A stretch of 64,000 nt of DNA from Calcarisporiella thermophila CBS 279.70. Taxonomy: Eukaryota > Fungi > Calcarisporiellomycota. Below are positions 2,999 through 54,379 of the stretch, piece by piece. Position numbers and translations under genes: made by a program. Numbering within the stretch: the stretch's first letter is position 1; the number at the start of each line of letters is the position of its first letter. The DNA is taken from positions 444,492 through 508,491 of the forward strand of contig NW_027192208.1 of assembly GCF_041956535.1 (NCBI RefSeq), written 5' to 3'. A model generated the notes under the pieces. That model did not search any database. It was not told the origin of the DNA and saw only the letters and a program-made list of their open reading frames with translations.

Positions 2999-4159
2999 AT
3001 GGCAACAAGAAATCGCACCATTCTATTCCTCCAGTACCGCAACTCCCTCTCTCGGCCAACGAAGAGTACCCATGTTACAGCCCCAAACGCTAGCACGGTC
3101 TCGCTTGAAGAACAGGCGGGGCTCATGGAGAGCAGCGATCATGTAATAGAGCTCTCGATTCTGCCGCCGCGGTGGGTGGACATTGTCGACGAGGTCAACG
3201 ATGATATCAAGGGAATTGAAAGTGATAGTGAGTAGCAGTTCTTTTTCCCCCCTCTAAACCAGATCGCTTGGATGGGTCGGAATCTGATCGTATGTGTGCG
3301 ATGGATAGTTACCCAGCTTGACCAGATGCATGCAAAGCATTTATTACCAGGCTTCGATGACAGTACATCCGATGAGATTGCCATTGAGCGCCTCACCGAT
3401 GCCATCACAAGGGTAAGAGCCTTGCTTTTTATCGACCACACTTTCTGGGCTAGTCTCTCATTGTTAAAACCCTATATATTTTCCCTCAGCAATTTCACAC
3501 GACCCAGAACAAAATTAAGCGGATTTTCCAGGAGGCCCGATCTGTACCAGGCGCATCGGCCAATGAGGACGCCCTTGCCCGCAATGTTCAGATGGCACTA
3601 GCTTCCCGGCTCCAGGATGTCTCCTCACGCTTCCGCAAGAAGCAGTCGGCCTACATGCAGCGTATGCGTGGACGGGTCTCCCGCAATAAGGACTACCTTA
3701 GCTTCACAGAATCTGGGGGCGACACCTCCGAGATGCTTCTGGAAGACGAGGAGGGGCATGAGGATGGGTTCACACAGTCTCAGCTTGAGCTGGTGGAATC
3801 CTCCAATCAAGCCATCACCCAGCGGTCGCACGAAATCGAGCAGATTGCAAAATCGATCTCGGAGGTGGCAGAAATCTTCCGGGAGCTGCAGACCATGGTC
3901 ATCGATCAGGGGACATTGCTCGACCGAATCGACTACAATGTGGAGATGGTGTCTACCCATGTCAAGGAAGCATCGAAGGAACTCGATCAGGTAATTCGGA
4001 TCCGCATCCCCTCTTTTGCATAGCATCGCTTGCTCATCCTGCTTGGACTTGTAGGGCGCACTATACCAGAAGCGAGCACGGAAGCGGCAGATCATGCTGC
4101 TGCTGATCCTCCTAATCATCGGGCTGATCATCGTGCTGCTGTTCAAGCCACGGCGATAG
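2999..4159 (+). CDS. TLG2: Qa-SNARE syntaxin-16/Tlg2, 4 exons
   Basis: N-peptide MATRNRTILF, HLLPGFDD, SNARE motif QGTLLDRIDYN, C-terminal TM IMLLLILLIIGLIIVLLFK in last exon; three GT-AG introns restore frame. Confidence 0.93.
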
Positions 4160-49959: not shown

Positions 49960-51330
49960 ATGTCCGATATAGAAGATCTCGCTCCACTTGAGCCTACTCT
50001 CCAGAACGTTCTCGATCAAACATCTCTTCACTGGATTTTCGTTGGAGGGAAAGGTGGTGTCGGAAAAACGACTACATCTTGCTCTCTTGCTGTTCAGCTT
50101 TCAAAAGTAAGAGAGTCCGTACTCTTGATTTCAACAGATCCTGCCCACAATCTGTCAGATGCATTTGGTCAAAAATTCAGCAAAGAAGCTACTCTAGTAA
50201 ACGGCTTCAATAATCTTTATGCTATGGAAATTGATCCTACATCCAGTATTCGCGAGATCATTGAGCAAAGTATTATAAGATTTATAAATTTATTTCATCT
50301 CTAGGAGATTGATATACATTTTATTAATATTAGCTGAGCAACAAGGTGGTGCAATGAGCTCAATCATGCAGGACTTAGCATTCGCTATTCCCGGTGTTGA
50401 TGAGGCAATGGGATTTGCAGAAGTGATGAAGTAAATAACATTCTTTTCTATTAATGTTTCCATCATTAACAAATTTTTTAGACAAGTCAAAAATATGCAA
50501 TTTTCAGTTGTCGTTTTCGATACTGCTCCCACTGGACATACTCTTCGCTTCCTCTCATTCCCGAGCGTGTTAGAAAAAGCTTTGGGAAAGGTATCTCAGC
50601 TTAGTGGGCGGTTTGGTCCTATGATTCAACAGGTAAATTTTTTTTCATTTTTGCGATTCGCTATTCTATGACAATTCTAATCTCCCCCATTATTGCACCT
50701 TTAAAGATGTCTGGTATGATGGGTATGAACTCTGACCAAGAGGACATGTTTAGTAAGCTCGAATCGATGCGTGGTGTAATTGCTGAAGTCAACAAGCAGT
50801 TCCAAGATCCCGTACTTACTGATTTTCTGTCATTTCCACGCAATATTGCTCAAACAGCTTTTTACTCCTTATTTAGGATACGACTACTTTTATTTGTGTG
50901 TGCATCTCTGAATTTTTATCGCTTTATGAGACTGAACGTATGATACAGGAGTTAACTGCTTATCATATCGACACTCACAATATCGTTGTAAACCAACTGC
51001 TATTCCCCAAAAAAGGTGAAGCTTTCTTTTATTATTATATTCAAACGCGCAAGTTTTAATCATGATTATACCTGTTATAGACTCCAATTGCGAGCATTGC
51101 TCTGTCCGCCACAAAATGCAGCAAAAATATCTCGAACAAATTCATGAATTATACGACGATTTTCATGTTGTCCAAATGGTAAGTTATATATATTAAATAT
51201 AAAGTATTATACCTTATTTAAATTGAGTGCCTTCTGTTAGCCGATGCTTACAAAGGAAGTTCGAGGTATTGAAGATATCAAACGTTTCGGCGAAATGTTA
51301 ATGCGGCCATATAAACCAACAGAAAATTAG
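49960..51330 (+). CDS. GET3: ATPase Get3/ASNA1, 7 exons
   Basis: [34 protein letters not shown], CxxC (CEHC). Confidence 0.97.
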
Positions 51331-51545
51331 ATTATAACTAATCGCATCCTTTTCTCAAGATATACTTTATCGGATGAGAATAAAATGTTTGCCATGAAAA
51401 TCATGTTTTTCGTAATTATTTATCAATGGTCAAATTGGAGAAAGTGAAAAGTGTATTTATTGATAACTTAGGGAGCGCGGTAACCTACTAAAAAGATTCT
51501 TGCGTTAATCGTGATAAAAAAATGAGTACACACTAAAAATTCTTA

Positions 51546-51616
51546 TTAAATCAGTTTATAAATATTATCATTTCAATCAAATGGTACGGACAAAAAATAT
51601 AAATTCATCATTTTAA
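51546..51616 (-). ncRNA. Box C/D snoRNA with 25S rRNA guide
   Basis: C box ATGATGA (51611-51605), guide TTGTCCGTACCA complementary to 25S UGGUACGGACAA, D' TTGA, C' ATGATAA, D box CTGA (51554-51551), terminal stem ttaaa/tttaa. Confidence 0.83.
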
Positions 51617-51740
51617 GGAAGTATGTAGGTAAACAATGAATGAACACTAACCTGTCTAAAATATTTAGTGTGGATTTACCTATAAATAAGGGATATGAGT
51701 TAATCTTGATACGATATATTAAAAAAAAGTATATTATGAA

Positions 51741-51817
51741 AAAATCAGTAGGTTAATAAAGTTCATCATTGGAAAACCATCTTGAAAATAGATCCGATTT
51801 AAAGATACATCATATTT
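51741..51817 (-). ncRNA. Box C/D snoRNA with 25S rRNA guide (U50-region target)
   Basis: C box ATGATGT (51813-51807), 12-nt guide CGGATCTATTTT complementary to 25S AAAAUAGAUCCG, C' ATGATGA, D box CTGA (51748-51745). Confidence 0.78.
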
Positions 51818-51942
51818 GTGTAAAACTTGTAAGAAATAAAAGTGCCTATTTACCTTATTGAGAATGCAGCGAGAATGTTGTCTACATTAAATTAAAATGT
51901 TAATATCAATATAATAATTAAAAATTGTTGTTTTTTTAAAAA

Positions 51943-52014
51943 AATGTCAGTCTCGAAAAAAACGTAATCATTATACTTCATTATAGCGTATATATAATAT
52001 AGCCATCATCCATA
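51943..52014 (-). ncRNA. Box C/D snoRNA, U54/SNORD54-like guide for 18S rRNA
   Basis: C box ATGATGG (52009-52003), guide ATATACGCTAT complementary to 18S AUAGCGUAUAU, D' ATGA, C' ATGATT, D box CTGA (51950-51947). Confidence 0.8.
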
Positions 52015-52463
52015 AAGTCATTTGAGTATTATCATAGGAAATGCTTACCTCTGAATAAGACAATAAACAAAAATACGAAGGTGTGCATCTCGAGTAAGCA
52101 AACTGTTTATATATACACATTGCTGCGCCATAAACAATTCGCTCCAAAAAAATGAGGTTTCTAAAATTGGTTTGAAGTGCCTCAATAGGATACAATATAA
52201 ATTAAACTACTTACGAACATTAACTATATCGTTAGATAGTTTAAATGTAGGTTTCGAAGGGAGGAACTTAGAAGTAGAATGGGTTCTCCTGATAACTTTT
52301 CAAATAGTATTTGATTGTATTATAGAGTTAACTTATATTCCATGCTGCTCTATATAATATACTCTAGACTTTCATGTTTATTATATTGCGTGTGCATTTA
52401 GTATTTATGTAATAAGCTCATAAATAAACTGGCGTTATGTGATAGTAACTCAAATTTTTCAAT

Positions 52464-54379
52464 TTAAAGCATCGTTCGAACAACTGAAGTTGCGACACGC
52501 ACAAGATAGGGGACCTGTCGCTCTGGTTGCAGAAAAGTATTGTCATCCACAGGATCACAGTAGTTTCGCAGCAAATCCAGTTCCTAGAAGAGGAAGATAT
52601 TGAGATTTAGGCACAATATATCCAGAAGTTACTTGCTTAACCTTGCGAAGCATTGCCCGAAGTTTTTCATTTTTCGAGATCATAATTACTTGAGCTTCCA
52701 AATCTCTTTCCATTGACCGGTGTCCGAAGTTGGGGGAGCCAACCATCGTCAGGCAAGGTAACTCGTCTTGTGCGGGGGTACACCATAGACCTGCAGAATT
52801 CATCAGTAAACTTTGGGGAAATCGAAATAGTTAAAAGATATTATCCGAACCTTTGGCATGATAGGTCCAGCCCGGCCGATTGTATTCCTCTATAATAATT
52901 TTATCCAATTTATTGCGCTTTTTGATTTCATTATAGAAATTGTGTTCGATATAGGTATATGCGGCAGGAAGGTGTCTAGATACTCCTTTTGAATTAAAAA
53001 ATCCGTTGGCCTAGATACAAAATGTTGGACGCAGAAAAATTCATAAGCGTATTTTTTTAAAAAATAATTACTCATTTTACCTCGGGCGCTGCTGTTAGGA
53101 TTCGAAAACTTGAATTCATTTTTAAAACACGCTCTTTATATTTTTTTTCAAAATTGAAATATCCTGATGTAAGAGCAACAGACCATGGGTTTTCAATTGA
53201 ATTTCTCTGAACTATATCAAGTAGTCTTAATGTCACAACCTCATCTTGTCGTATTCCGAGAGGACCCATTTGGATTAATGGCATAACCAATGTATCATTA
53301 GAAGTAGGTGATTGATAAATCCGAGAAGAGGGCGCTTGTTGGATCCATCTCTGAATGAAATTGCGCATGCGCTTTGATGCTAAACTTTTAAACGCGATAC
53401 TTTGACGCACAGGATCTACGCTGTTGGCTGGTATACGCAGGCTGTATGGTCCACTCTCAGAATGCCTGGACGCATCAATATAATATGAAAATGAGGATAT
53501 AGTCTCGAGAAGTTTCGCGAAATAATCGGTGAGCTCAGGTGCGTCACCAAAGTATATATAGCGGTCTTGACGATTGGTAAAATAATCGCTACTTAAATTT
53601 GCTCTAGCATGTTGCATGCAACAATATTAGCAAAAATACTATAGCAAATGATGGACGGAAATAATAGTTACCCACTTAACACAAGATTGTTATCGAAGCC
53701 GTATGCTTTAATATGCTGCAAGCCGATACCTTCATTGAAGCGCTGAGGAAGTGTTCGTTTTAGTATGCCTGTAAGATCAGGTGTATGGTACAAAGATATA
53801 TGAACGCGATCTTTGAAATCGCGTACTAGAGGTGTAAGAAGAGATGCAGGACTGTTCTCACTTCCACGAGTCCCTCGTAGACAATCCATTAAAATATGCA
53901 CACGCAATTTCGAATTGTTTTCGAGCGCTTCTCTAATTGAGTTCACCTTATTAAGATGTCAGAAAATACAAGCTATATGTCGAACATTTAAATTCAAATA
54001 TTTACTAAGTCTAACTCGGCAGAGCCTATATATAATGCTGATAAGAAAATACGATCCTTTGCCTGAAGGATTGAAGACTGAACAAAGTTTTGGTTAATGC
54101 AACACACTTCATTCAGCTAAACATATAAATTCTTACCTTGAGCGTATTGTAAAACTCATCAGGAGTATAAATCGGAATAACAGCGTGACCATTTAAAGGA
54201 ATAACAGGTGCAAGATCGTACAATTCAGTAAACGGATTTAATTCTGGACTTTTCACTGTGGCTGTATCCGAAGTATTAGTGTAGGATCTGCGCAGAGGTA
54301 GCAAACATCTCAAAAATCGCGAGATTTTTGTACTATATCTCAAATTGGTTAGGACTACTCGCGATAATGATAATGCCAT
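52464..54379 (-). CDS. PGS1: CDP-diacylglycerol--glycerol-3-phosphate 3-phosphatidyltransferase, 7 exons
   Basis: RIFLSALYIG, GLQHIKAYGFD, SGANLSSDYFTNRQDRY, WTYHAKGLW, GSPNFGHRS. Confidence 0.95.

Follow-up and report, generated by a model that had tools for sequence, protein, structure and literature searches.

Three candidate box C/D snoRNAs, one to an intron, in a putative non-coding transcript from the gap that separates GET3 from PGS1 in an early-diverging fungus

The vertebrate genes UHG (the U22 host gene) and GAS5 are spliced non-coding hosts that carry one snoRNA per intron, and their introns and exons are far larger than those described below. In vertebrates the intronic snoRNA is reportedly set ~50 nt upstream of the branch point, a placement that Hirose and Steitz are said to have described in 2001. 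Fungi have hosts of the same kind. In Neurospora crassa, UHG-like non-coding hosts (clusters I-V) with one C/D snoRNA per intron have been shown by RT-PCR (PMC2780460); like the transcript proposed here they have canonical splice signals and short ORFs, and the snoRNA lies 41-60 nt from the 5' splice site. Fungal clusters I-III are likewise found in non-coding hosts, including those of the zygomycete Rhizopus oryzae, which is early-diverging too and in which the cluster snoRNAs are all intronic and the host RNAs lack long ORFs (PMC3596301). Stepwise splicing and very short or even zero-length exons have been described for such hosts (PMC3596301). Because hosts of this design have been published for both Neurospora (PMC2780460) and Rhizopus (PMC3596301), the trio of units that we report is a further case of a known design, whose novelty the preliminary description of the locus overrated. 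The novelty lies in the locus and in what it contains, namely a U54-type guide, a snoR117-type guide and a third guide, and not in the design; the current view of snoRNA gene organisation is unchanged by the trio.

The analysed window, by which we mean the whole 64-kb stretch of DNA (G000:C18:444492-508491), belongs to a 28-Mb genome. In it GET3 on the plus strand and PGS1 on the minus strand are convergent, with 1133 nt of AT-rich sequence (25-30% G+C) between their stop codons, and GET3 is also convergent with the proposed host. When the ORFs over the region were searched, none in this gap matched a Pfam family. The gap is bounded by the following features.

51241-51330, plus strand: last coding stretch of GET3, with its stop codon TAG at 51328-51330
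52464-52583, minus strand: true last exon of PGS1, 39 codons and the stop codon TAA at 52466-52464, following a 49-nt intron at 52632-52584

A Pfam search places the ArsA_ATPase domain in the first GET3 exon. PGS1 takes its identity from exon homologues named CDP-diacylglycerol--glycerol-3-phosphate 3-phosphatidyltransferase; the best homologues of its exons are 47-48% identical, and among named taxa Mortierellomycota and Mucoromycota come closest, at ~40-43% identity. With the C-terminus of a relative the last PGS1 exon shares 67% identity, and both finish at the same residue. A plain ORF reading misses this exon, and the apparent stop at 52555 sits in the spliced-out frame. A synteny check of two relatives found PGS1 followed by a gamma-tubulin-complex gene, with neither GET3 nor the gap there.

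Read on the minus strand, the gap can be parsed into a transcript of five exons and four introns, as had been proposed for it. All of the coordinates, the GT..AG boundaries and the AATAAA signal of that parse proved exact, while its first exon and first intron are weak.

51440-52300, minus strand: putative host transcript from the sequence parse, its 5' end undefined and its 3' end inferred from AATAAA at 51461-51456
52215-52300, minus strand: putative exon 1, uncertain, its start arbitrary, with a pyrimidine-rich stretch inside
52161-52214, minus strand: putative intron 1, 54 nt, GT..AG but weak, without a snoRNA
52049-52160, minus strand: exon 2, 112 nt, with the start codon (ATG at 52131) of the longest frame
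51882-52048, minus strand: intron 2, 167 nt, donor GAG/GTAAGC (slash at the splice site; PWM score 9.37, top 0.6%), TTAAC 18 nt from the 3' splice site
51854-51881, minus strand: exon 3, 28 nt, from the sequence parse
51680-51853, minus strand: intron 3, 174 nt, donor AAG/GTAAAT (PWM score 10.39, top 0.25%), TTAAC 20 nt from the 3' splice site
51652-51679, minus strand: exon 4, 28 nt, starting with GTAAAT
51488-51651, minus strand: intron 4, 164 nt, donor CAG/GTTAGT (PWM score 6.09, top 4.5%), TTAAC 17 nt from the 3' splice site
51440-51487, minus strand: last exon, ~48 nt, with AATAAA at 51461-51456

Donors were scored with a position weight matrix built from the 31 ORF-joining introns of the window and ranked among all of its GT sites. 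By this measure intron 1 has a good donor (GTAAGT, 7.33, top 2%); a usable branch motif was not found in it, the sole branch-like motif lying 41 nt from its 3' end. Introns 2-4 had been called unusually long, and so they are: the ORF-joining introns of the window are mostly 57-81 nt (median ~73), which makes the snoRNA introns 2-3 times the usual size. The exons are as small and as devoid of protein as had been stated. Read exon by exon, the longest frame runs for 41 codons from the ATG at 52131 to a TAA at 51667-51665. At the level of sequence the parse thus has two of the features by which a UHG/GAS5-like host is recognised, namely one snoRNA per GT..AG intron with canonical splice signals, and exons of 112, 28, 28 and ~48 nt that hold no significant ORF and no Pfam match. 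The junction of exon 3 with exon 4 (at 51652-51680) re-creates AAG/GTAAAT, the donor of intron 3, so that a second round of splicing could leave exon 4 out.

Introns 2, 3 and 4 each carry one unit with the boxes C, D', C' and D located in that order, in agreement with the preliminary description. We call the units sno1, sno2 and sno3.

51943-52014, minus strand: sno1, box C ATGATGG at 52009-52003, D' ATGA at 51981-51978, C' ATGATTA at 51971-51965, D CTGA at 51950-51947
51993-51983, minus strand: D' guide of sno1, 11 perfect pairs with own SSU 594-604, predicting Gm597
51741-51817, minus strand: sno2, box C ATGATGT at 51813-51807, D' AAGA at 51783-51780, C' ATGATGA at 51769-51763, D CTGA at 51748-51745
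51796-51785, minus strand: D' guide of sno2, 12 perfect pairs with own LSU 2013-2024, predicting Am2016 (+/-1)
51546-51616, minus strand: sno3, box C ATGATGA at 51611-51605, D' TTGA at 51580-51577, C' ATGATAA at 51571-51565, D CTGA at 51554-51551
51593-51582, minus strand: D' guide of sno3, 12 perfect pairs and one G-U with own LSU 2212-2223, predicting Um2215

Box C of sno3 fits RUGAUGA, those of sno1 and sno2 each depart from it at the last position, and all three D boxes are CTGA. The D' boxes are degenerate (ATGA, AAGA and TTGA in sno1, sno2 and sno3), AAGA carrying two mismatches, and the predicted sno2 site is uncertain by one nucleotide either way for this reason. A terminal stem of 5 bp closes sno3, and stems of ~3 bp close sno1 and sno2. 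The minimum free energy folds of the units as single strands are no better than those of shuffled sequences, as expected for the box C/D class.

Rfam, which had been named beforehand as a check, matched no family at gathering thresholds anywhere in the window and gave just weak hits at permissive E-values. Guides were therefore matched to the organism's own rDNA, which was found on contig G000:C53 by primer-like pattern and comprises the LSU (3492 nt), the SSU (1807 nt) and 5.8S. The repeat also includes a 5S rRNA gene, oriented opposite to 18S-5.8S-25S (L006 8771-8889, minus strand). If a guide is taken to be at least 10 nt of antisense ending 1-2 nt before D or D', all three units have one at D'. 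The three guides are in D'+5 register and stand far above their next-best targets in the organism's own rRNA. The antisense elements of 11-12 nt had been one of the points on which the proposal was set in advance to stand or fall, and they pair with this rRNA over 11, 12 and 12 perfect pairs. A search of mature rRNA, the spacers and the rest of the rDNA contig gave no convincing target for the guides at box D.

The placement of the units within their introns hardly varies. In introns 2, 3 and 4 the distance from the 5' splice site to the start of box C is 39, 40 and 40 nt, and that from the end of box D to the 3' splice site is 65, 65 and 63 nt. All three have TTAAC as branch site 17-20 nt before the YAG, and box D ends ~45 nt before this TTAAC. 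Of all window positions, 0.18% have a decent donor 35-50 nt upstream and, 55-80 nt downstream, a branch site with YAG; for three units together the probability is ~6e-9.

A second host in the same genome repeats this layout. Rfam U14 matches contig G000:C29 at 61.4 bits (E = 1.2e-11), and the match belongs to an snR190-U14 unit.

L127 1003-1720 (G000:C29:300594-301311): snR190-U14 host unit, two consecutive introns with one C/D snoRNA each
L127 1149-1405 and 1460-1665: the two introns, with a 54-nt exon between them

A 14-nt guide in the snR190-like snoRNA matches own LSU 2495-2508, and the guides of U14 match own SSU 84-95 and 412-425. Upstream of the unit are TATAAAAG (a TATA box), a pyrimidine-rich leader and, ~45 nt before the TATA box, CAGTCACG, which resembles the fission-yeast HomolD box; on the downstream side the last exon is short and carries AATAAA. 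With spacings of 48/48 and 76/73 nt, the snR190-U14 host has the same one-snoRNA-per-intron design as the trio but ~10 nt more on each side; its cluster is conserved across fungi. Because the layout recurs in this host, we regard one snoRNA per intron as a habit of this genome. Together the trio and snR190-U14 make a clean case of fixed snoRNA placement in tiny fungal introns, which should be useful for snoRNA finders. Rfam SNORD27 gave no match in this genome.

These observations bear on whether the units are released by splicing at all. Clusters in S. cerevisiae and in plants are commonly processed from unspliced mono- or polycistronic precursors by an endonuclease and exonucleases, and were that so here, the GT..AG parse would be fortuitous or a decayed relic. 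We consider this very improbable, in view of strong donors, TTAAC and YAG all at constant distances, whose joint chance occurrence was given above, and of the U14 unit of the same genome, whose introns follow the same design. Release from introns remains the reading that we prefer, and the question becomes what the released RNAs would guide.

For sno1 the answer depends on the numbering of the SSU. The U14 of this genome predicts Cm416, for which the Arabidopsis counterpart is C418, so own SSU numbering is that of Arabidopsis minus 2, and own G597 corresponds to Arabidopsis G599, the U54 site, and to human Gm644. In Arabidopsis, SSU G599 (Gm597 in older numbering) is guided by U54; its human equivalent is Gm644, and yeast has no counterpart. 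The U54/SNORD54 snoRNAs of plants and human thus have the same predicted target as sno1 and share with it guide function only: Rfam brought up no hit of sno1 to this family, even with E allowed up to 10. An assignment of the sno1 site to yeast Gm562 was also considered and rejected, as numbering anchored on the organism's own U14 gives the U54 site. For sno2, Rfam gave no match at E up to 10, and the tables of Arabidopsis and Neurospora hold no site equivalent to A2016.

The D' guide of sno3 is, over 13 nt, identical and in the same register to the Rfam snoR117 consensus (RF01423), and this 13-mer is unique in the genome. The unit as a whole scores 15.4 bits against RF01423, below the gathering score of 42. 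As guide and register are identical, we predict that sno3 works like snoR117, although it is no scoring member of the family. Arabidopsis snoR117 was cloned, northern-blotted and found to be nucleolar, with a predicted site at 25S Um2103 that is listed as unmodified in yeast and human; RiboMeth-seq later found the site as U2114 (PMC2875012, PMC8053127). It is the same conserved LSU uridine as that of sno3 (Um2103/U2114 in Arabidopsis, U2215 here), although the Arabidopsis gene lies in a non-intronic polycistronic cluster whereas sno3 is intronic. SNORD18/U18 (RF00093), with 19.4 bits against a gathering score of 41, was rejected as an identity for sno3; the match comprises the boxes plus GUCCGU only, and the sno3 target is LSU 2212-2223 and not the A650-660 region, the U18 site being Arabidopsis 25S A661 and N. 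crassa 26S Am635.

The content of the trio also sets it apart from the published fungal clusters. Those in Rhizopus and other fungi are snR78-72, snR57-55-61 and snR41-70-51 (PMC3596301), and sno1-sno3 is a different cluster. The Neurospora table has no U54-type, snoR117-type or sno2-type guide (PMC2780460), and its hosts were demonstrated by RT-PCR, whereas ours is read from DNA sequence. The text of the survey of the fungal snoRNAome mentions neither U54-type nor snoR117-type guides.

Short matches to rRNA arise readily, and we therefore asked how often units like these would appear by chance. Within the interval, 12-mer matches to rRNA without any box requirement number 5, against 0.9 expected, and because such bare matches arise by chance here the box context is decisive. 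A relaxed box-plus-guide scan, in which D' with up to 2 mismatches is followed by a C' box, was run over both strands of the window (128 kb) and returned exactly sno1, sno2 and sno3, against an average of 0.125 in shuffled windows. A strict scan of the whole window, in which a terminal stem is required and D' may have at most 1 mismatch, returned sno3 only, with a null expectation of 0.075. When the segment from C to C' was shuffled, an equal match length was reached in 2.3% (sno1), 0.8% (sno2) and 0.9% (sno3) of trials.

Could any of the units still be a chance look-alike or a dead copy, sno2 and sno1 being the likeliest cases? The doubts attach to the D' box of sno2 and to its target, which has no reported modification in the model organisms checked, to the weak terminal stem and G-ending box C of sno1, and to the excess of bare 12-mers. 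Against these, all three units pass the box-plus-guide scan when nothing else in 128 kb does, they share one intron geometry, and the site at which sno1 is aimed has been validated as Nm in plants and human. We give this possibility scarcely any weight and treat all three as genuine snoRNA candidates. Two further perfect 12-mers lie outside a box context. One, at 51646-51657 on the plus strand, is complementary to own LSU 3068-3079 and overlaps the intron 4 donor; the other, at 51545-51556 on the minus strand, is complementary to own SSU 101-112 and overlaps box D of sno3. Chance most likely accounts for both.

We think it likely that the locus is a short, separate, minus-strand non-coding unit transcribed by polymerase II, which serves only to deliver the three intronic box C/D snoRNAs. 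That it is a separate gene with its own promoter, and not an extension of PGS1, is the weakest part of this explanation, and the signals in the gap make it moderately probable. PGS1 is read from the same strand, and only ~165 nt separate its stop codon from putative exon 1, and 416 nt from the donor of the first snoRNA intron, which makes an extension of that gene possible. The snoRNA introns would then sit in a long PGS1 3'-UTR, the host would be protein-coding, and the read-through or long-UTR transcripts would probably be targets of nonsense-mediated decay. The weakness of exon 1 and intron 1 suits such an arrangement, as does the lack of a distinctive promoter motif in the sequence. Two signals speak for a separate gene: ~70 nt beyond the PGS1 stop comes an AATAAA in TA-rich context, and between it and putative exon 1 stands a TATA-like element (~52362-52351). 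The multi-snoRNA clusters described in fungi, moreover, are in non-coding hosts, and three or four UTR introns would presumably burden an mRNA that is essential for lipid synthesis. On balance we consider the 3'-UTR arrangement unlikely.

If the unit is a separate non-coding gene, a polymerase II transcript from the stretch where PGS1 and GET3 converge would be spliced, and the resulting lariats would be debranched and then trimmed by exonucleases down to the snoRNP core, with the proteins Snu13, Nop56, Nop58 and fibrillarin/Nop1 expected on the C/D and C'/D' boxes. Mature RNAs of ~71-77 nt would remain. The spliced exons (112, 28, 28 and ~48 nt), having no meaningful reading frame, would probably be discarded, and the snoRNPs would 2'-O-methylate SSU G597, LSU A2016 and LSU U2215.

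On this explanation three snoRNA genes and their host lie unannotated in a genome where ORF-based annotation would miss them. Three rRNA methylations are predicted, and two of them tie early-diverging fungi to the patterns of plants and animals, not to that of yeast. A more far-reaching proposal, which we put forward tentatively and regard as somewhat doubtful, is that this zygomycete-grade fungus has retained two guides for methylations known from plants (the snoR117 site) or from plants and animals (the U54 site) and missing from yeast and the Neurospora list, and a third guide for a site not reported in the model organisms checked, all at a fixed, mammal-like spacing of ~45 nt upstream of the branch point. 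Were they true orthologues, the sites would go back to the last common ancestor of eukaryotes, with a loss in Dikarya, and snoRNP assembly that is coupled to splicing and depends on position would be an ancestral trait of opisthokonts.

When metagenomes were scanned with the sno3 guide, most matches were due to chance; ~20 were true snoR117-type C/D snoRNAs on algal-like or plant-like contigs, and guides of the sno1 or sno2 kind were found beside none of these ~20. Many of the algal snoR117-type copies have a conserved second guide at box D, which the fungal sno3 lacks. On GC-rich contigs that are probably from green algae, the snoR117-type snoRNA stands in two or three tandem copies (L033 891-1455; L041).
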